The notes below the pieces were generated by a model. That model ran no database searches, was not told where the DNA came from, and saw only the letters and a list, made by a program, of their open reading frames with translations. Shown piece by piece: positions 9,136 through 61,439 of a stretch of 64,000 bases of DNA (position 1 is its first letter; each line of letters opens with the position of its first letter). Source of the stretch: Macrostomum lignano (lineage: Eukaryota). The stretch lies in NCBI GenBank assembly GCA_002269645.1, contig NIVC01001265.1, positions 1-64,000 on the forward strand. Direction: 5' to 3'. The position numbers and the translations under genes are program-made.

Positions 9136-9176
9136 ATAGAAATAATCCTATACATGTAGCCAAGCTTATCAAGCGC

Positions 9177-11243
9177 AGTAATCCTTGGCTATCGAGTGCA
9201 GTAATCCTTGGTTTATTAATAGCAATAATCCATGGCTTATCGAGTGCAGTAATCCTTGGTTTATTAATAGCAATAATCCTTGGCTTATCGAGTGCAGTAA
9301 TTCATGGTTTATTAATAGCAATAATCCTTGGCTTATCGAGTGCAGTAATCCTTGGTTTATTAATAGCAATAATCCATGGCTTATCGAGTGCAGTAATCCT
9401 TGGTTTGCCAAGAGCAATAATCCTTGGCTTATCGAGTGCAGTAATCCTTGGTTTATTAATAGCAATAATCCATGGCTTATCGAGTGCAGTAATCCTTGGT
9501 TTGCCAAGAGCAATAGTCCTTGGCTTATCGAGTGCAGTAATCCTTGGTTTGCCAAGAGCAATAGTCCTTGGTTTATTGAGTGCAGTAATCCTTGGTTTAT
9601 TAATAGCAATAGTCCTTGGTTTATTGAGTGCAGTAATCCTTGGTTTATTAATAGCAATAATCCATGGCTTATCGAGTGCAGTAATCCTTGGTTTGCCAAG
9701 AGCAATAGTCCTTGGCTTATCGAGTGCAGTAATCCTTGGTTTGCCAAGAGCAATAGTCCTTGGCTTATCGAGTGCAGTAATCCTTGGTTTGCCAAGTGCA
9801 TAATCCTTGGTTTATTAATAGCAATAATCCTTGGCTTATCGAGTGCAGTAATCCTTGGTTTATTAATAGCAATAATCCTTGGTTTATCGAGTGCATTAAT
9901 CCTTGGTTTATTAATAGCAATAATCCTTGGCTTATCGAGTGCAGTAATCCTTGGTTTATTAATAGCAATAATCCATGGCTTATCGAGTGCAGTAATCCTT
10001 GGTTTATTAATAGCAATAATCCTTGGCTTATCGAGTGCAGTAATCCTTGGTTTATTAATAGCAATAATCCATGGCTTATCGAGTGCAGTAATCCTTGGTT
10101 TGCCAAGAGCAATAGTCCTTGGCTTATCGAGTGCAGTAATCCTTGGTTTGCCAAGAGCAATAGTCCTTGGTTTATTGAGTGCAGTAATCCTTGGTTTATT
10201 AATAGCAATAGTCCTTGGTTTATTGAGTGCAGTAATCCTTGGTTTATTAATAGCAATAATCCTTGGCTTATCGAGTGCAGTAATCCTTGGTTTGCCAAGT
10301 GCATAATCCTTGGTTTATCGAGTGCAGTAATCCTTGGTTTATTAATAGCAATAATCCTTGGCTTATCGAGTGCAGTAATCCTTGGTTTATTAATAGCAAT
10401 AATCCATGGCTTATCGAGTGCAGTAATCCTTGGTTTGCCAAGAGCAATAGTCCTTGGCTTATCGAGTGCAGTAATCCTTGGTTTGCCAAGAGCAATAGTC
10501 CTTGGTTTATTGAGTGCAGTAATCCTTGGTTTATTAATAGCAATAGTCCTTGGTTTATTGAGTGCAGTAATCCTTGGTTTATTAATAGCAATAATCCTTG
10601 GCTTATCGAGTGCAGTAATCCTTGGTTTGCCAAGTGCATAATCCTTGGTTTATTAATAGCAATAATCCTTGGCTTATCGAGTGCAGTAATCCTTGGTTTA
10701 TTAATAGCAATAATCCTTGGTTTATCGAGTGCATTAATCCTTGGTTTATTAATAGCAATAATCCTTGGCTTATCGAGTGCAGTAATCCTTGGTTTATTAA
10801 TAGCAATAATCCTTGGCTTATCGAGTGCAGTAATCCTTGGTTTGCCAAGAGCAATAGTCCTTGGTTTTTTTAGTGCAGTAATCCTTGGTTTATTAATAGC
10901 AATAGTCCTTGGTTTATTGAGTGCAGTAATGCTTGGTTTATTAATAGCAATAATCCTTGGCTTATCGATTGCAGTAATCCTTGGTTTGCCAAGTGCATAA
11001 TCCTTGGTTTATTAATAGCAATAATCCTTGGTTTATCGAGTGCAGTAATCCTTAGTTTATTAATAGCAATAATCCTTGGCTTATCGAGTGCAGTAATCCT
11101 TGGTTTATTAATAGCAATAATCCATGGCTTATCGAGTGCAGTAATCCTTGGTTTGCCAAGAGCAATAATCCTTGGCTTATCGAGTGCAGTATTCCTTGGT
11201 TTGCCAAGAGCAATAATCCTTAGCTTATCGAGTGCAGTAATCT
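9177..11243. repeat. 24/48 bp dimeric minisatellite (GCAGTAATCCTTGGTTTATTAATA-GCAATAATCCTTGGCTTATCGAGT)
   Basis: About 2 kb array of alternating 24-bp subunits. It produces all the overlapping ORFs at 9169-11000. Confidence 0.95.
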
Positions 11244-15170: not shown

Positions 15171-17373
15171 TCAATAAGAGTTCTCGTGCAGGTAGCAGGC
15201 AGCCCGTTGCACGACAGCCTCGCAGTACGGCGCCATCTCCAGCGTGCTGAAGCTCACGAGCAGCGCGGAGTTGACGGCCATCAGGCAGTACAGGTAGTCG
15301 TCATCGGCGACGCACCTGCCAAACAGCAGGCCGGGCTCCGCTCGCAACAGCCGGTAGCGACGTCCGTGCAACGACAGGCCGGCTGAGTAGGCTTCGTGTG
15401 GGTCCAGGAAGGCGAACAGGATTGCTCGGAGCTCTGACTCGGTTGGAGTTGAGTCCGGATCTGCCGTGCTGCCCCAGAGAACTGGCGCTGGTCTGGGTGC
15501 TCGTCTGCGCGATGTTTGAGTAGCTTTTGATGTTTTGGTGCTTGAGTAGCTATTGATGTTTGAGTAGCTACTGATGTTTGAGTAGCTATTGATGTTTGAG
15601 TAGCTATTGATGTTTGAGTAGCTACTGATGTTTGAGTAGCTATTGATGCTTGAGTAGCTATTGATGTTTGAGTAGCTATTGATGTTTGAGTATCTATTGA
15701 TGTTTGAGTAGCTATTGATGCTTGAGTAGCTATTGATGTTTGAGTAGCTATTGATGCTTGAGTAGCTATTGATGTTTGAGTAGCTATTGATGTTTGAGTA
15801 GCTATTGATGTTTGAGTAGCTATTGATGTTTGAGTAGCTATTGATGTTTGAGTAGCTATTGATGTTTGAGTAGCTACTGATGTTTGAGTAGCTATTGATG
15901 TTTGAGTAGCTATTGATGTTTGAGTAGCTACTGATGTTTGCGTAGCTATTGATGTTTGAGTAGCTATTGATGTTTGAGTAGCTATTGATGTTTGAGTATC
16001 TATTGATGTTTGAGTAGCTATTGATGCTTGAGTAGCTATTGATGTTTAAGTAGCTATTGATGCTTGAGTAGCTATTGATGTTTGAGTAGCTATTGATGTT
16101 TGAGTAGCTATTGATGTTTGAGTAGCTATTGATGTTTGAGTAGCTATTGATGCTTGAGTAGCTATTGATGTTTGAGTAGCTATTGATGTTTGAGTAGCTA
16201 TTGATGTTTGAGTAGCTATTGATGTTTGAGTAGCTATTGATGTTTGAGTAGCTATTGATGTTTGAGTGGCGATTGATGTTTGAGTAGCTATTGATGCTTG
16301 AGTAGCTATTGATGTTTGAGTAGCTATTGATGTTTGAGTAGCTATTGATGTTTGAGTAGCTATTGATGTTTGAGTAGCTATTGATGTTTGAGTAGCTATT
16401 GATGTTTGAGTAGCTATTGATGTTTGAGTAGCTATTGATGTTTGAGTAGCTATTGATGTTTGAGTAGCTATTGATGTTTGAGTAGCTATTGATTTTGAGT
16501 AGCTATTGATGTTTGAGTGGCGATTGATGTTTGAGTAGCTATTGATTTTGAGTAGCTATTGATGTTTGAGTAGCTATTGATGCTTGAGTAGCTATTGATG
16601 TTTGAGTAGCTATTGATGCTTGAGTAGCTATTGATGCTTGAGTAGCTATTGATGTTTGAGTAGCTATTGATGCTTGAGTAGCTATTGATGTTTGAGTAGC
16701 TATTGATGTTTGAGTAGCTATTGATGTTTGAGTAGCTATTGATGTTTGAGTAGCTATTGATGTTTGAGTAGCTATTGATGTTTGAGTAGCTATTGATGTT
16801 TGAGTAGCTATTGATGTTTGAGTAGCTATTGATGTTTGAGTAGCTATTGATGTTTGAGTAGCTATTGATGCTTGAGTAGCTATTGATGTTTGAGTAGCTA
16901 TTGATGTTTGAGTAGCTATTGATGTTTGAGTAGCTATTGATGTTTGAGTAGCTATTGATGTTTGAGTAGCTATTGATGTTTGAGTAGCTATTGATTTTGA
17001 GTAGCTATTGATGTTTGAGTGGCGATTGATGTTTGAGTAGCTATTGATGCTTGAGTAGCTATTGATGTTTGAGTAGCTATTGATGTTTGAGTAGCTATTG
17101 ATGTTTGAGTAGCTATTGATGTTTGAGTAGCTATTGATGTTTGAGTAGCTATTGATGTTTGAGTAGCTATTGATGCTTGAGTATCTATTGATGCTTGAGT
17201 AGCTATCAAGTAGAATCAACTCTGAGACAAATCCCGAATCTTATTCAATAAACTCAGCAGACAAAGGCGCACCTGGACACCACGCTGGCCACAATGTCCT
17301 CCCTTTCTGAGCAGATGTTGATCTTCAGCCATTCCTGCCACCGCTTCCTCCGCCAGTCCGAGGGCTCACTCAT
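15171..17373 (-). CDS. Divergent profilin-like protein, ~140-144 aa, 2 exons
   Basis: Exon 1 is 17373-17273 (MSEPSDWRRKRWQEWLKINICSEREDIVASVVS, donor AG|GTGCGC). Exon 2 is 15504 (or 15492) to 15171 (..PVLWGST..ELRAILFAFLDP..AGLSLHGRRYRLLRAE..EAVVQRAACYLHENSY*). Phases match, and the motifs parallel the profilin pattern WQxY / VWA / GLxLxGxKY / ADYLxxxGY. Confidence 0.8.
15511..17207. repeat. 18-bp minisatellite (GTAGCTATTGATGTTTGA) filling the profilin intron
   Basis: About 94 units. Source of the SIATQT and SNINSY ORFs. Confidence 0.97.
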
Positions 17374-22156: not shown

Positions 22157-37745
<15,589 letters not shown>

Positions 37746-43658: not shown

Positions 43659-48052
<4,394 letters not shown>

Positions 48053-53009: not shown

Positions 53010-53953
53010 TTCCCTTCCTATAAATCATTTGACGTTAGAGACATTTTACAACTCTCGCCCTACTTTATCTATTAGGCTAACTTTATGTATGACACGACGC
53101 AAAATATTAGGAGCATCAGCGTTAATAATGCCTTGAAAGTCTTTAAATAATCGATACAACACTAGGTATTATAAAATTCCAACCCCAAAGCTCACTGGGG
53201 CGAAAAGACTTTGTCTTCATTAACTAGTTAGAACTATTGATACACTATATAACGGAAAACGAAATTTACTTACCTAATACAGTGATTAGTTTAAGAACTT
53301 GCTTAGACCGGCTTTCGCGCTCAGATTCTTCATAAATTCTTGAAGGAATCGATATCTTCGAGCGGTATTTATAAAAACTAACAATTAAACACGCTAAATT
53401 GCAAACACGGTGAGATGAAAACAAAACGAACAGACAGAGGGGCGCAGGGCCTAAACGGGGTATATTTATTCGAATAAACAAGAAAGGGTGCAAGATGGGG
53501 TGGAGTGCGCGACTGAGGAAAGAGGCGAGAACTGAGAGCCAATCAGAAGGCAGCGAGGGAGAGAGATAAAAAATAACAAAATTGAACTAGACAGACTCTA
53601 GCTCGTACTGAGACTGCGTGTTATTGTCTTTCTAGATCACAAACAATGTGGAAACACAGTTAATGGTATAAATTGTAAAACACGCGAGCGCCTACCGGCG
53701 CAATGGTATCAAAGCAACTATACCATTGTTAATATATCGACGCTTTGATGCCTAAAACTTTTCAACCCTTCAAACTTTCTACCCTCTGATGTACTTTAAC
53801 ATTAGCATACACCTGATGGCCTGGCAATGTGTTTACGCCTAAAAAAGTCGATCATTTGATGCTAAACAATTTCCACTTTCTTGAAGAGTTACACTCTTTC
53901 TACCTAAGAATTCGGCTGAATATACTCGTAAAAAATCAAAGCAAGTCTTTAAA

Positions 53954-56900
53954 TCAAAGCGGCGTGATAGTTCTGCTGCCCAGAGCCAGTTTGGTAATAA
54001 TGAAGACTGCGGCGCCCACCAGGCCTACGCTAACAATTGGCACAACAACTACCACGGCAATGAAGGCTGGGTCCGAACCGTCAGGACCGATCGGTGGCCG
54101 GGTTTCCGTCGAAGACTCTGTCTCCGTTGAAGACTCAGTTGAGCTCGCTGTCGCTGTTGATAGGCCGGTTGTTACCGTTGCCTCCGCGGTTGTTGTGCTC
54201 GAAGTTGTTACCACTGTTGTTGCTGTTGAGGATGATGTTGACTCTGTTGATTGGGTCGATTTAGTTGTAGTTGTAGTTACCGTTGATCTAGCTGTAGTTT
54301 CCGTGGATGTAGTCGTAGTTCCCGTCAGTTCCGCAGTGCTTTCCGTTTTATCTGGCGTTGTTTCCGTTGCCCTGTCCGTCAATCCGCTTGTCGATTCTGT
54401 TGACCCTGGTTCGGCACTCGTCGTCAATTTTGTCGCCGCATCAGTCGAAGAAGTTTCGGTACCCGGTTTCTCAGTTGTTCCACCTGCTGTTGTTGCAGTT
54501 GTTGCTTCCAACGTAGTTTCCGCCGTCGTTTCCATCGTAGTTTCCATCGTAGTTTCCATCGTAGTTCCCGGTGTCGTTTCCGGAGGGGGGAATCGTTTGC
54601 CTACGTTGGGCAGCACCCGATCCCAGAAGTTGCACTCCCGGTCCATAAAAATGTCGGTCGCTAGCTGCTGCTGCTCAGCTCGCATCACCAAGCTGACTGG
54701 CGCATCCGGCTTGTAGCGAGGCCAGCCTGTCGGCGGCCAGCTTGGCACTCCCGAGCTGGCAAAGTTCGCCAGGCTTCGAATTAGCACCCGAGACAGATTA
54801 GCTCGCTCCGGCGACTGCGCCTCCGCGGAGGCCGTCGGGAAGCCAAACGCATAAGACGCGTCGTGAACTAAAATTTTGCATTTTAATAGGGCTAAAGTAT
54901 ATATAAAAAATTCAAACCGGTCGCATTACGATAGTGTCATAAAAAATCGTGTTAAAAGAGGGGTGCAGTGTCGTGAGAATGCATCTCGAAAAGGATGGCT
55001 GTACCCTTGAGTCCTTGAGTGATGTCAAAGATCAAAGAGAGTTATAGTACCGTGTGAGATTGTGTCAAAAAGAGTGATGCAGAACTGCTAGAGCATGTTG
55101 AAGAGATTGACAGGCTTGACGCAAGCATGAGCTGTGATAGAGACCGGTTCATGTGGATCCAGACTCACACAAGGTCGCCTCTGGTAGCGATGTGCCAATC
55201 GAACGGAATGGCTCCTCAAATCGGAATTTGTACACGGCTCTGCTGTTTTCAGCGGACACTGCGCCCAAAAACAGCTGATTGCTGCAGGTGAACATTCGAT
55301 TGCTGATGGCATTGGCCAGAGCACGCTCGTCTCGAGTGTAGTTGTCTCGGCTGAAGTAATCCGTAAAGTGCAACACTAGCGCCGTCTTGATGTCACTCCG
55401 TGGTTCAGTTGGGAATCTAGGGAAGTGCGCTATGACCTCAAGAAGTTCCTGCGGGCGCGAGTAAGCAGAAATTCCTTGGCAACTTTGTTTAATCAGTCAG
55501 TCAGTCAGTCAGTCAGTCAGTCAGTCAGTCAGTCAGTCAGTCAGTCAGTCAGTCAGTCAGTCAGTCAGTCAGTCAGTCAGTCAGTCAGTCAGTCAGTCAG
55601 TCAGTCAGTCAGTCAGTCAGTCAGTCAGTCAGTCAGTCAGTCAGTCAGTCAGTCAGTCACCTTCAGAAACTCAGCATGTGTGAAGTTCTCGCCGATCCGC
55701 ATGCGCTGAACTAGAATGTTCCCAGGCCCGTCAACGCCGCCAACCAGCAGAGGCACGGAGGCCAGGTCGGCCCCGCCCATGGCAAGCGGGTCGGACCGAA
55801 TGAAATCGCCATCGATGACTGGCGGAAACTCGATCCCGGTGTACAGCCGGTTGAAGTCGCGCTGTCTCTCGTTGATGAAAGTGGCATTAAGCGCTCTGAG
55901 CCCGGCTAGGCAGGCCGGTATGTCGTCTGAGCCGCAGTTGAGCACGTTCTGAGCAAACACTCGGTTGATGAGCCGGACGCTGGCCGTATCGTTGGACACT
56001 GGGTAGGGCATGTACGGCGACCCGGTGAGCAGCACGGCTCGTTGGAACAGCACCGGCGACCGCGCCAAGTGGTAGCCAATCGACGCCGCTCCCGCCTCCA
56101 CCCCCATCAGCGTGACTTTAGTCCGACTGCCGCCGAATTTTTCAATGTTGTACCTGATCCACTTTAACGCCTCTTCCTGATCGCGCAGGCCGAAATTCCC
56201 CGACACCGTGCTGTTGTCCAGCGACAGGAAGCCGAAGGCGCCAATGCGGTAAGCGACGGTCACCAGTAGCAGCTTGGCACTGTCCAGCACTCGATGCCCG
56301 CGCCAATCCGAGACGGCGCCGAACTGAAAGAAGCCACCGTGCAGGAAGACAATGACGGGAAGATCATCCTCCGACAGGTCGCTGTGCACCGGAGTCCAGA
56401 TGTTCAGGTAGAGGCAGTCCTCAGACATGCTCGACACGAACTCGTCCCGCTGCATGCACGGCGGAGGCATGCTTAGCGCCAGGATGCGATTGTCTTGAAG
56501 AATTTCCATGGGGGGAAGTGAAACTGCGTTAGGATTCGGCCTCTACTGATGTAGGTTGTTTGTAAAGTTGTTTTTTTTGCAAAAAACCGCCGAGTTTGAT
56601 AAATTAGATTTTTTCGCTTAGTAAAGTCGACATGCATTTGCTAACGAGTCGTTTAAAATAGTGAAATATTTTTATAAAGATTTACGAAATGTTCTGCGAG
56701 CAAATTTTTTTATTTTTTTAATCCGGACGTAGAACGCTGTCCGTTGCATCTGATCCTACGAGATCCTTTTTATGCCCACCCTACATGCATGTCTCGTGTC
56801 CCTTCCATATCTCCCAATATCCCGTCCATGTCTTTACAATGTTCCTTCCATGTCTGTAAATTGTCCCTTCCATGTCTTCTTCTATGTCTTTGCAATGTTC

Positions 56901-59900
56901 CTTCCATGTCTGTCTATTTTCCTTCCATGCGTTTACAATATCCCTTTCATGTCTTTACAATGCCATTTCAATGTCTTTACAACGTCGGTTCCAGGTCCCT
57001 TTTATTTCATGGGCCACATTCTTTTCCTGTCTTCCACTGACGCGCGATGCACTTTCTAGCATGATCCAGAGATCACAAGTACCGATAGCATAACTTAAAG
57101 CTAACACCAGAGCAGATCATCAGCTTACTGGTCCCAGAAAGCGGTTTCGGATTAGCAAATCTGAGTTCTCCGACGGGCGGCTCAGCGTACGGCACGCCCA
57201 GAAACTGGGTCAGGGTGGTGCCGGCCTCGGTTCGTATCGTCTCGCCAAGCACTGAACCGTAGCCCACCACAGTAATGCTGTAATTCCTCAGGACCAAGTA
57301 ATCCACTCTTCTGACTCTGTTCGACTCCGGGACTTCTTGCGCCTGTTTCGGCTCGGCGGCCATCGAATTGTCAAACTGAGCAGTCAGTAGGCCAGCGTCC
57401 GGTCCGCATAGCCTGTTATGAAACGGCATCTCGTGCTTCCACACTGGGCAGCGGCCGGGCTCGAGGCTGAAGCCGTCTGGCAGAGAATCCGCGCTCGACG
57501 AGTCGTTGGCGGCGCGGTAGTTCATGAACTCTGTGCCGTTCAGCCCCGTCCGAGGCCACGCATTGTCGAGATCTGAGTAGGGGTAGGTGGGTGTCATTTC
57601 GTCTGCTGAAACATCTGCTGTTGAGGCATCTGCTAGACCATCTGCTGTTGAGGCATCTGCTAGACCATCTGCTGTTGAGGCATCTGCTAGACCATCTGCT
57701 GTTGAGGCATCTGCTGGAGCATCTGCTGTGTGAAGCATCTGCTGGAGCATCTGCTGTGTGAAACATCTGCTGGAGCATCTGCTGGAGCATCTGCTGGAGC
57801 ATCTGCTGGAGCATCTACTGTTGAGGCATCTGCTGGAGCATCTGCTGTTGAAGCATCTGCTGGAGCATCTGCTGTTGAAGCATCTGCTGGAGCATCTGCT
57901 GGAGCATCTGCTGTGTGAAGCATCTGCTGGAGCATCTGCTGGAGCATCTGCTGTGTGAAGCATCTGCTGGAGCATCTGCTGGAGCATCTGCTGTGTAAAG
58001 CATCTGCTGGAGCATCTGCTGGAGCATCTGCTGGAGCATCTGCTGGAGCATCTGCTGGAGCATCTGCTGGAGCATCTGCTGTGTGAAGCATCTGCTGGAG
58101 CAGAGCCCCCTGCTCTCGCAAACTGGCTCCTATTCTCCCTCCTACATTCCCAAATTGCACCAAAGATGTCGCCAACCTTCCAGCCTGACGAAGCGGCCAA
58201 GGTGGTCCATCATGGTGCTGGCCAGGCTCTCGTGTCCGGCGGGATATCCGGCTCGCACCAGCGGCTCGCCCAAGAAGTAGCGCACGTCAACGCTGTGATC
58301 CCCGCGTGAATCGATGGGATCCGTGACGTTCATCTGGTAGACGTAAACGGGCTCCGTCGACGGCGCCTGCAGAAGGTCGCCGGCCGCCTCCCAGACCGGA
58401 CAGGCGTAGCGAAAGTCGCCGATAGCTTGGGCCAGCAGCGGCCGGACGGCCTCGCCGAATTTCTTGGTCGGCCAGTCGGCCAGCGACAATCGAAGGAAGT
58501 TTTGGCCGCACGGACTGGTCTGGGTGTGCACTCGGGGGAAGTGGAGGAACTCCTGGCTGACAATCTGCGGGGGGACGATTAGAGATTAGTCACGCGCTCT
58601 GAGTCCATAGGGTGTCGTTGTTACAGGCGGTGGTTGCCTATAAAACTCGAAATATTCGCAGGAGGGCTGCGGGCTCGCTGATGCAGCTCCTCAACCAGCT
58701 CTGAAGGCAATTCTGCCCATTCCGCTGACTGCTGAGCGCATACAAGCGCGCCAATACTGTACGCAGGCACCACTCGTACACACGCTCACGCAGGGTGTAC
58801 ACAGCGACCCTGACTTTGTAATCGCCAGGCATGCAGCTCGTACACTGGCTGGCTTTGAACGGAATCGAACCAAGGCTCGAGGCTAGAGAGACAGATGCGT
58901 TCTCTGCTGGGCTGCTCTGCCCCCCCCCCACACACCATCCTGATTCACAATGCCGAGACTTAGGCGCTAATGGAATCGCTCGAACAGCTCGGGGTATGCT
59001 CTCTATCGCCGTCCAAGTGACCTATACGCGCCGAGCCGAACATGCACTGCCCACTGCTTAAGATAGAGTTTGAGTCTCAGTTAGGGTGTAAGAATTAGGA
59101 TTATGGATAAGACTTAAGTTATGTTGTTAGATTCCTGGCAGTTAATTTTCGTAGACCCAGCCAGCCCAGCAACCACGGACAACTGAAGCAGAAGGACCAC
59201 TATACTCGAGTTTCTTAAAAATGAGCCAGAGGCCCGTAAGGAAGGCATGTCTGTCGGATTTCGTCATAAATACAGATTTCTCGAGACCATACTGAATTCT
59301 CAAGCCTCCTTGCGCCCTTCTAGATCAGTTGCCCATGAGTTCAACATGCCAGCAAGCTTTTCGCACCACACTCGATACATTCTAATTGTCAGTAGACGAT
59401 CTCTTCTACAGTTCATCTCGATTCAAACTCGCACCTGGTTGAAGACGCTCTCAGTGACGTCGGGCCACTGCCCACCCTCAAGCGCCGCGTCAGCTCTCGG
59501 TCCACCAGAGTTGACGGCCGCTCCGGTCAGCACCGAGAAGTTTGAACCCTGCCGCCAGAGGTCCAGCGGGCCGCCGCTGCCATTGGGGAACATCTCCCCT
59601 GAGCCCAGCGGCACAAAGCCGTCCGGCGACACCGAGGCGGCCGCCAGCAGAAGCTGCTCGACACTGACCGCGACCAGGCAGTTTAACGATTCCTCGGGGC
59701 TGGACAAGTTGCAGGCAAGCTGGTTGGCCAGTTGCCAGCCCAGCTTCTGCGCTTCATCCGGCGAGTCAGACCAGGCTAGCGGCGAGGCAATCGATCCGCC
59801 CAGCATGGCGACCCGCTGGAACAGCGAGCCGTCAGAGCCGTCCGCCACCGCCAGGAGTCCCGCGGCGGCTGCGGCGTTGCCGTGGCCGGCCAGCGACACC

Positions 59901-60496
59901 CGAGCGGCGTCGCCGCCGAAGCTGCCGACGGCCTCCTCAAGGAACTGAATTGCCAGCAGTTGATCGCGCAGGCCCAGATTATCTGGAACTCCGTCGAAGC
60001 TCAGGTAACCAAGGACGCCCTGGCGAGACTGGACCGTTGCTAGGACAACGCCGTGGATGGCGCTGAAAACGTCGCCAAGCTCGACGCCGACCTCCTGGCT
60101 GGCGAGCAGGATCAGCACCGGCTGCCTGCCGGCCAGGTCTCTAGACCGGACGCTGAGGTGCAGGCAGTCCTCGGACTGGCCGGCCGAGTTGTTGAAGTCG
60201 CCAAACGGGCAGGCAGGCGGCGGCAGAGTGGCGTTGATGCTCAGCGTCTCCGAGAACGGCTCCGCCTGCTGGAATCGCAGCGGCGGCTGCGCGTAGCCGA
60301 CGGAGAGAAAGCGGGACACCCGGTGGTCCGTGTTGTTGTGGTAGGTCAGGCGGATCTCCTGCCCGATGATTGTTGCATTCTGGTGCTGCACCTGCACCTC
60401 CCCGACCACCGAGGTGCTGAGCAGCTGCCCGTTGCTCCGTAGAGTTGCCGCTAGTAGCAGCAAAAGCAGCGAAAGCCGCGATACTTCAGTTAGCAT
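53954..60496 (-). CDS. Type I membrane protein with two tandem non-catalytic carboxylesterase/cholinesterase-like domains, a Thr/Ser mucin stalk, TM and short tail; ~1,316 aa, 6 exons
   Basis: Phase-consistent exons: 60496-59435, 58564-58177, 57572 (or 57602)-57129, 56523-55661, 55448-55169, 54867-53954. The hallmarks EDCLxL and NxGLRDQ each occur twice, along with FLGVPYAEPPVGELRF and CxFW/CPVW domain ends. Nucleophile elbows are GHGNA and GVEAG, neither with Ser. Confidence 0.88.
55493..55658. repeat. (CAGT)n microsatellite filling most of a 212-nt intron
   Basis: About 41 units, contiguous with the GTGACT donor site. Confidence 0.97.
57603..58100. repeat. 12-bp-based intronic repeat (GAGCATCTGCTG) with variants
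   Basis: Source of the ADAPAD, MLQQ and SRCS ORFs. Confidence 0.93.
58655..58912 (-). mobile_element. tRNA-derived SINE, copy 3 (intronic)
   Basis: Perfect B box GGTTCGATTCC on the minus strand at 58871-58861. The body is homologous to copies 1 and 2. Confidence 0.78.
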
Positions 60497-61439
60497 CACG
60501 GACGGTCGATTTCTATGCTCGACACGGTTAGCCAAGAGCGAATCTGCCAGTAAGTCGCATTTTAAACTCGTGCCTTATCTACTCACATTTCTTTGCTTTG
60601 AAATAGGTTTCCATGGCAACCAGAGTCGCAGTTTAGAAGCTTGCACTAATGAATAGCAAGCATACTTTGCTTTTTTCGAGTCAGAGTTTCTCTGTCCATC
60701 CTTATCGGGTAGCCATATGGCTTGCTTGTTGGGCCTCTTATCTCCCAGCAAGACTGCCCCCCTGCCCTCCGCTCGGTGGCTTTGATGAAGGCAATCTCTG
60801 CCTCTGGTAGATATTTTTTCATTACTTTAAAATTGCATGCCAAGTTATTAACCATTTCTAGAATAATTTTTATTCCACTTCACGCTGAGCGTGCTATTTA
60901 CGATCTAGTAGATTATATACTGACATTGCACGCGATTTAAATTCGTTTGTACTACTTGCAGTAGGTAAAAAAAATCAGCGTCGCAGAATTATGACGAAAT
61001 AATTAACAAACAACAGCAATTTTCCCATCGAAAATGATGAGGTTTATTGCATTTTTGGGGCCTGTTGATTTCAAATGAATAAAGGTGTATTTTAAATAAA
61101 TCGGTATAGATTATTTAAAAACTATACCAAACTATACTAAAAAATATACTACTAAAATCGATTAGTTTGACGGTTTTAGGGAAATACTACGTGTCATAAG
61201 ACAAAGCCTGGGCAGGTGAGGGGAGTGATTAATCATGCATAATAGGAGATGCTGATGCTGATTGGACAACAAGCGGGTAAGTTGAGTGAAAGTTGAGATT
61301 AAGAAGATGAATCACTTAGATAGTGAGATTGCGAGTCTGTTTCTCTGTCTGTCACTCCCTAGCCTCTGACGGCTGTCACTCTCAATGCTCCTAGTCTGTA
61401 TATGTCACTCCTACATTGTATAGTCTGTCACTCCTTACG

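Follow-up and report, generated by a model that had tools for sequence, protein, structure and literature searches.

Introduction

Neuroligins, gliotactin, and the cholinesterase-like (ChEL) domain of thyroglobulin are textbook cases of an enzyme fold that has been reused for binding and dimerization. To our knowledge, all described non-catalytic proteins with the cholinesterase (ChE) fold have a single such domain and pair between chains. Here, we describe a gene of the flatworm Macrostomum lignano whose predicted product carries two ChE-fold domains, D1 and D2, in one chain. The gene lies on the minus strand, at positions 60496-53954, of a 64,000-nucleotide (nt) stretch of genomic DNA (positions 1 to 64,000 of contig NIVC01001265.1, assembly GCA_002269645.1), to which we refer as the window.

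Neuroligins are type I membrane proteins in which a non-catalytic ectodomain of the ChE fold sits on an O-glycosylated stalk, followed by one transmembrane helix and, at the C-terminus, a PDZ-binding motif (PMC8526735). The window protein resembles neuroligins and gliotactin in its type I topology, its ChE-fold ectodomain with dead catalytic sites, its putatively O-glycosylated stalk, and its single transmembrane helix. It departs from them in that they have one ChE-like domain and dimerize between chains, whereas here two domains share one chain, and in that their cytoplasmic domain is much longer, with gephyrin and PDZ motifs conserved across isoforms, whereas the tail of the window protein has 13 amino acids (aa). 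Thyroglobulin ChEL is likewise a dead ChE-like domain that serves as a structural or dimerization module, and D1 matches it among PDB sequences with an E value of 4e-25; in contrast to the window domains, it is single, forms the C-terminal part of a large secreted protein confined to vertebrates, and has no transmembrane helix. As a membrane protein with a dead ChE-like ectodomain, the window protein falls among the cholinesterase-like adhesion molecules (neuroligin, gliotactin, and neurotactin), with two domains in place of one.

We consider it reasonably likely that this gene encodes a type I single-pass glycoprotein in which two dead ChE-fold domains, fused in a lineage-specific tandem and raised on a stalk, act at the cell surface in binding or adhesion, with no enzymatic role.

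Results

One gene encodes both domains

We rebuilt the minus-strand gene model from the window DNA, reading positions 53800-60700, with the six exons proposed in an earlier note made from the sequence alone. The six exons join into one open reading frame (ORF) of 3,951 nt, or 1,316 aa plus the stop codon, as that note had it; every intron has a GT donor and an AG acceptor, the phases are consistent, and ambiguity is confined to the acceptor of exon 4 (56523 or 56493). Coding exon 1 (59435..60496) starts with the ATG at 60496 and covers aa 1-354. By tblastn, the exon-to-protein map, Pfam, and PDB alignment, it comprises the signal peptide MLTEVSRLSLLLLLLAATLRSNG, at about 60425-60496, and then the first two thirds of D1, in which the dead nucleophile elbow LAGHGNAAAAAG lies. 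Coding exon 2 (58177..58564; aa 355-483) ends in phase 1 and supplies the C-terminal half of D1 with its retained His (GDHSVDVRYFLGEP). The intron before it is in phase 0 and falls 7 aa ahead of an HFP motif, a position matched in the paralog genes described below.

Coding exon 3 (57129..57572; aa 484-631) is the junction exon. It runs without interruption from the C-terminal helix of D1 (GRCPVWKHEMP), which aligns with the C-terminal C-x-F-W helix of acetylcholinesterase (AChE), through a linker of about 45 aa into the first strands of D2, FLGVPYAEPPVGELRF, which include an NYS sequon. With this whole transition encoded by a single exon, the pairing of the two domains does not reflect a gene merge. 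The exon map thus bears out the original proposal that the fusion is encoded within exon 57572-57129. Two paralogs have an equivalent junction exon, at aa 476-615 of PAA79323.1 (P0004) and aa 479-614 of PAA79327.1 (P0151). Two additional Cys residues, at aa 373 in D1 (TSPCGQ) and aa 539 in the linker (NRLCGPD), are not conserved in the paralogs; they could form an extra disulfide that pins the linker to D1, or could remain free.

Coding exon 4 (55661..56523) carries the core of D2, with EDCLYLNIWTP, the HGG motif, the dead elbow MGVEAGAAS, and VDGPGN. Splicing 30 nt downstream of 56523, at another AG at 56493, would also keep the frame and would give a protein of 1,306 aa. Acceptor 56493 is more likely to be the one used, or to be an alternative one, since the 10 aa added by 56523 (ISLPPMEILQ) occur in none of the paralogs in the family alignment and since the UniProt model P0001 uses 56493; the resulting length matches all paralogs at this point. 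Coding exon 5 (55169..55448; aa 920-1012) ends in phase 1 and is preceded by a phase-0 intron 7 aa ahead of HFP, the same relative position as that of the D1 intron. Coding exon 6 (53954..54867) contains the C-terminus of D2 (DRECNFWDRV), the site at which Leu replaces the catalytic His (ATLFHDASYAFG), the stalk, the transmembrane helix, and the cytoplasmic tail, and it closes with the stop codon at 53954-53956.

Degenerate catalytic sites in both domains

Pfam matches COesterase (PF00135; cut-off, 27 bits) twice, at aa 35-504 for D1 (E = 8.8e-55, 187 bits) and at aa 586-1094 for D2, with E = 1.9e-147 and 492.8 bits for the whole protein; together with one transmembrane helix after D2, this is the layout that had been predicted. 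The two domains are 25.8% identical. For both, the best PDB sequence matches are AChE and butyrylcholinesterase (BChE), at E values of 2e-61 for D2 and 5e-27 for D1.

Catalytic positions were assigned from pairwise PDB alignments, the family alignment, and an alignment of 114 ChE domains. In D1 the nucleophile elbow reads G-H-G-N-A, with Gly in place of Ser, the triad acid is Ser, the His is kept, and a 7-residue deletion has removed the HGG loop. In D2 the elbow reads G-V-E-A-G, with Glu in place of Ser, the acid is Pro (VDGPGN), the His is Leu, and HGG is kept. These alignments agree with the earlier reading of the D1 elbow, HGG loop, and His and with that of the D2 HGG, elbow, and Leu. In place of Ser-Glu-His, the triads are thus Gly/Ser/His and Glu/Pro/Leu. 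Because neither domain has a usable Ser-acid-His triad, neither can, as judged from these residues, be a conventional esterase.

The frame of the ChE fold is better preserved. Cys pairs occupy ChE disulfide positions in D1 (96/111, 262/273, and 409/525) and in D2 (654/668, 828/836, and 974/1091), all as aligned positions, and the protein has 17 N-glycosylation sequons. In AChE, the first Cys loop holds 26 residues between its Cys and bears the choline-binding Trp. Here, that loop has 14 residues in D1 (C96-C111) and 13 in D2 (C654-C668), with no Trp in either, and from its sequence neither domain can be a conventional choline binder. The window protein thus shares with AChE and BChE the three disulfide positions, the C-terminal C-x-F/V-W helix, and the fold; unlike them, it has no triad, has a Cys loop of 13-14 residues, and is anchored by its own transmembrane helix.

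Stalk, transmembrane helix, and tail

Downstream of D2, a mucin-like stalk (54080..54589, minus strand) contains 39% Thr, 14% Ser, and 12% Glu and includes short in-frame tandem repeats (TTME three times). The stalk had been put at about 150 aa; the Thr/Ser-rich character holds, and the length is 170 aa. It leads to a single transmembrane helix of 23 residues, FIAVVVVVPIVSVGLVGAAVFII (53996..54064), which is, besides the signal peptide, the sole hydrophobic 19-mer with a Kyte-Doolittle mean above 1.8. The same hydrophobicity scan of the window protein found no hydrophobic segment between D1 and D2. The cytoplasmic tail, TKLALGSRTITPL (53957..53995), is short as described before, at 13 rather than about 12 aa, and ends in T-P-L. 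At the juxtamembrane end of the stalk, a motif T-R-P-P-I-G-P-D/E-G (54080-54105, aa about 1267-1275) recurs after D2 in several units of a longer M. lignano protein model, A0A1I8G704; it may be a conserved site of cleavage, shedding, or anchoring.

The T-P-L ending had been taken for a class I PDZ motif. It does match S/T-x-hydrophobic, but it is not conserved among the paralogs: M. lignano relatives end in GGYTG, RQRHE, NSLG, or PKRK, and none in T-P-L. From residue frequencies, we estimate that this three-residue pattern arises by chance in roughly a few per cent of sequences, which makes it weak evidence, and a PDZ function of T-P-L in this flatworm family is not supported by these comparisons. 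Unrelated membrane proteins with tandem ChE domains also end in S/T-x-hydrophobic, namely, those of Glandiceps (...STKL), Styela (...VSAL), and Saccoglossus (...STSM). Among about a dozen tandem-ChE sequences, such ends are commoner than one would expect by chance.

A family of paralogs in Macrostomum lignano

With P0001 as the query, we searched 1.84 billion representative proteins exhaustively by HMMER. The closest database proteins to the window protein are two M. lignano UniProt models, P0001 and P0002; P0001 shows 6 mismatches in about 990 aligned aa, across both domains and the junction. Two-domain paralogs are PAA79323.1 (Mlig025559.g3; 1,232 aa) and PAA79327.1 (Mlig007046.g1; 1,326 aa); in all, at least three M. 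lignano loci besides the window gene have the two-ChE-domain architecture. Like the window protein, both paralogs have a signal peptide, D1, D2, a Thr/Pro-rich stalk, and a transmembrane helix, and their genes share the junction exon and the phase-0 introns seven residues before [H/Q]FP in D1 and D2. They differ from it in that they are only about 42% identical and have longer cytoplasmic tails with other endings, and in PAA79323.1, unlike in the window protein, the His and the first disulfide of D1 are gone as well. Across these paralogs of about 42% identity, the dead-site signatures are conserved, with G-H-G in D1 and with G-x-Glu/Asp-A-G, VDxPGN, and Leu for His in D2. Single-domain, membrane-anchored, non-catalytic relatives also occur in M. 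lignano (PAA59329.1, A0A1I8GLC4, and P0044).

The largest model, A0A1I8G704 (P0003), has 3,380 aa, in which D1 and D2 types alternate three to four times with no transmembrane helices between them. Its units follow the window protein in the order of a D1-type (G-H-G) and then a D2-type (G-x-Glu/Asp-A-G) domain. A0A1I8G704 is almost certainly a set of neighboring two-domain paralogs that an older gene prediction fused and, since it looks like a merged paralog array, the genes of the family probably lie in a cluster. PAA79323.1, PAA79327.1, and A0A1I8G704 are annotated only as hypothetical or "COesterase domain-containing."

The Mlig_3_7 proteins in GenBank were translated, with TransDecoder, from transcripts assembled under the guidance of RNA-seq data (StringTie/TACO/TBONE) (PMC5730564), so the two-domain ORF of the paralogs is backed by mRNA. 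PAA79323.1 and PAA79327.1 lie on contig NIVC01000640.1 (207-264 kb), about 18 kb apart and in opposite orientation; their ectodomains are more than 90% identical, their stalks are of very different lengths, and their cytoplasmic tails are unrelated. This pair is separated by 37 synonymous and 37 non-synonymous changes, and its ratio of non-synonymous to synonymous rates (dN/dS) is 0.20 in D1, 0.50 in D2, and 0.35 overall, which indicates purifying selection.

Cholinesterase origin of both domains

We built a neighbor-joining tree of 114 ChE domains, with 509 columns and 100 bootstraps and with no bona fide neuroligin among the sequences. All M. lignano D1 and D2 domains fall in one clade (95% bootstrap), within which D1 (81%, taking in two single-domain M. 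lignano proteins) and D2 (82%) form separate clades. Among named sequences, those closest to the clade come from an acoel ("acetylcholinesterase 3") and from a priapulid (a cholinesterase-like protein). In a repeat tree of all domains of the 150 best matches, the smallest clade that holds every family domain contains M. lignano alone. The acoel protein, Hofstenia miamia QNG40887.1 (P0073), has the elbow G-N-D-A-G, with Asp for Ser, and keeps Glu and His; despite its annotation, it is probably not an active cholinesterase either, to judge from the elbow.

The G-H-G elbow led us to consider a neuroligin origin for D1, which we rejected on the PDB ranking and the tree. In that ranking, a less degenerate D1 of the family matches AChE at 205 bits and has no neuroligin among its top 60 matches. 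As judged from the domain sequences, D1 and D2 are derived from cholinesterases and not from neuroligins, because AChE tops the PDB ranking and the clade adjoins cholinesterases in a tree without a bona fide neuroligin. A per-domain phylogeny, proposed in the earlier note together with a neuroligin-like identity for the protein, thus places D1 and D2 beside cholinesterases; the type I topology of signal peptide, ChE-like ectodomain, stalk, and transmembrane helix stands, and the derivation from neuroligins is not borne out. Most likely, the tandem arose in this lineage by duplication of an intron-bearing ChE-like segment, and the two-domain gene multiplied later. From the sequences compared, the result is a Macrostomum-only family of membrane-anchored, putatively non-catalytic ChE-like proteins with one or two domains.

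Predicted structure of the two-domain chain

AlphaFold was run on P0001, which is nearly identical to the window protein but is N-terminally truncated, lacks two short segments, and is partly mis-spliced. With a 47-sequence alignment of two-domain proteins as input, the 1,013-aa chain was modeled with a predicted local distance difference test score (pLDDT) of 76 and a predicted template modeling score (pTM) of 0.72, with a disordered linker (P0001 438-484); a single-sequence run (pLDDT 32, pTM 0.24) was discarded. Each domain of the P0001 model superimposes on PDB structures of BChE, AChE, and CES2 with target-normalized TM-scores of 0.78-0.82, and the long helix and the C-terminal helix are present in both. 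For two domains of about the same size, the pTM of 0.72 suggests that the mutual arrangement of D1 and D2 is confidently predicted in this model.

Tandem cholinesterase domains in other phyla

Also among the HMMER matches were numerous proteins, 1,000-2,400 aa long, in which ChE domains occur two to four times. Unnamed tandem-ChE proteins of RefSeq and GenBank with a signal peptide and a C-terminal transmembrane segment, annotated as "uncharacterized," occur in sea urchins (Lytechinus XP_054767789 and Diadema XP_071500051), the starfish Acanthaster (XP_022100211), hemichordates (Saccoglossus XP_006825066 and Glandiceps), the nemertean Lineus (XP_064622620), bivalves (Ostrea XP_048759521, Mactra, Solemya, and Saccostrea), and, with four ChE domains, the tunicate Styela. 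Those listed with XP_ accessions resemble the window protein in length (~1,130-1,350 aa), signal peptide, two ChE domains, and C-terminal transmembrane segment. The 114-domain alignment shows dead sites in both ChE domains of the sea urchin and Lineus proteins. Unlike the window protein, those of molluscs keep Ser/Glu/His, and most versions from other phyla are without the long mucin stalk.

The proteins of Styela, Solemya, Saccostrea, Ostrea, and Mactra have two to four tandem ChE domains with an apparently intact triad in most, are labeled "uncharacterized," and have, in Styela, Ostrea, and Mactra, a C-terminal hydrophobic anchor. From their residues, the tunicate and bivalve proteins look like multi-headed membrane esterases. 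In the tree, domains from other phyla group by lineage (Ostrea d1 with d2 at 100%, Tigriopus at 87%), and none joins the flatworm D1 or D2. This lineage-wise clustering points to repeated independent duplications.

Literature searches with phrases for tandem or double cholinesterase, carboxylesterase, or esterase domains returned nothing relevant, nor did searches for the paralog gene identifiers. The tandem-ChE architecture therefore appears to be present in databases and undescribed in the literature. The earlier note knew of no named protein of this architecture, and we found none named or described; the architecture is nevertheless not unique, given the unnamed proteins in several phyla.

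Repeats in and around the gene

Intron 2 contains a non-coding minisatellite (57602..58102; ~500 bp) with a unit of 12/24-27 nt in about 19-38 copies, which gives rise to spurious ORFs of up to 375 aa on both strands (57.6-58.2 kb). A perfect (TCAG)42 microsatellite (55493..55659) makes up most of intron 4 and abuts the exon-4 donor. Positions 1-53000 of the window consist almost entirely of dozens of unrelated micro- and minisatellite arrays in series, with periods of 4-48 nt and lengths of 0.2-2 kb each, for example, at 425-2231, 9166-11242, 15542-17206, 27606-29370, and 43944-44838. The long upstream ORFs are read-through of tandem repeats; a Pfam scan of the window's ten longest remaining ORFs gave only low-complexity matches, on one of them. 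Scans for bacterial promoters and terminators and for tRNAs gave nothing relevant to a eukaryotic gene.

Discussion

In the reading that we prefer, that of a two-domain non-enzymatic surface module, the ectodomain would serve in binding or adhesion at the cell surface, by analogy with cholinesterase-like adhesion molecules. The putatively O-glycosylated stalk would hold it tens of nanometers off the membrane. D1 would pack on D2 in a fixed arrangement, possibly mimicking the ChE or neuroligin homodimer within one chain, and the tail would be too short for more than anchoring or one short-motif contact.

Several points weigh against this reading. The proposed function derives from architecture alone, and the gene model was read from genomic sequence alone, the window gene not being among the GenBank Mlig_3_7 proteins found. 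The selection estimate describes a paralog pair rather than the window gene and comprises 74 substitutions only. The structural model takes P0001 as a proxy, and its pTM is an indirect measure that is silent on which surfaces of D1 and D2 touch. Long-branch attraction between D1 and D2, both evolving fast, could have inflated their grouping in the tree. Finally, the C-terminal hydrophobic stretch and short tail could be read as the signal for a glycosylphosphatidylinositol (GPI) anchor.

Among other accounts of the protein, one would make it a non-covalent ligand trap or decoy, in which D2 binds and holds back a small molecule, perhaps a cationic one, on an exposed epithelium. All D2 copies have Glu or Asp at the nucleophile position and keep HGG, the acoel "AChE3" that adjoins the clade has Asp there as well, and the long mucin stalk, lineage-specific expansion, and fast divergence would suit a protein that faces the environment; we still hold this account to be unlikely, with the loop that bears the choline-binding Trp directly seen to be deleted. 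The acidic residue and the retained oxyanion HGG could also be those of a working hydrolase with Glu or Asp as nucleophile, as Asp is in some other alpha/beta-hydrolase families. Against this, the general base is gone (Leu at the His position) and the acid is Pro, both changes being conserved family-wide, and activity of this kind seems scarcely credible. Anchoring through GPI, with the tail removed and so unable to bind anything, would fit the hydrophobic C-terminal segment, the small residues before it (GPDGSD), the mere 13 residues after it, and the existence of GPI-anchored invertebrate cholinesterases. Such a signal would, however, be atypical in placing 13 residues with Lys/Arg behind a 23-residue hydrophobic helix, and in the paralogs the cytoplasmic tail is 28-75 aa long, so that we regard GPI anchoring as quite improbable.

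A flatworm neuroligin, engaged in synaptic adhesion with neurexin outside and PDZ scaffolds bound through T-P-L inside, is in our view very unlikely. The type I layout of ChE-like ectodomain, O-glycosylated stalk, and transmembrane helix is that of neuroligins (PMC8526735), the nucleophile position of D1 is Gly as in neuroligins, T-P-L fits S/T-x-hydrophobic, and unrelated membrane proteins with tandem ChE domains have similar ends (Glandiceps ...TKL, Styela ...SAL). Yet both domains belong to a Macrostomum-only clade beside cholinesterases, AChE and BChE come first in the PDB ranking, where the top 60 matches of a less degenerate family D1 include no neuroligin, the 13-aa tail leaves no room for a gephyrin-binding region, and no paralog ends in T-P-L. 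That two adjacent ChE-like genes only appear joined is hardly conceivable. Older M. lignano predictions do fuse neighbors, as in P0003, where three to four D1-D2 units are strung together over 3,380 aa; here, however, one uninterrupted exon spans the passage from D1 through the linker into D2, neither a stop codon nor a transmembrane helix follows D1, no signal peptide precedes D2, and the junction exon recurs in two transcript-derived paralog models. Gene merging as an explanation is close to refuted.

The reading of a non-enzymatic two-domain surface module also admits a more specific proposal, namely, that within one chain the dead domains D1 and D2 pair as cholinesterases and neuroligins do in their two-fold dimer, through a four-helix bundle of helices alpha7,8 and alpha10, with the halves then free to diverge, an arrangement reached convergently in flatworms, nemerteans, echinoderms/hemichordates, molluscs, and tunicates. 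We put this forward tentatively and think it possible but doubtful.

The gene is an uncharacterized lineage-specific variant among non-catalytic cholinesterase-like surface proteins, and its importance is limited, since the genome is highly duplicated and this is a paralog confined to the lineage. M. lignano offers RNA interference, in situ hybridization, and transgenesis (PMC5730564), and its function is therefore testable. Two fused and diverged dead domains would amount to a natural experiment on the ChE dimer, which asks whether covalently linked halves can specialize. With tandem-ChE membrane proteins scattered unnamed over many invertebrate phyla, the case marks a gap in the classification of alpha/beta-hydrolases and is not a one-off. 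If the single-chain dimer is true, these proteins would point to surface receptors with tandem ChE domains as a functional class that is general and, so far, undescribed.

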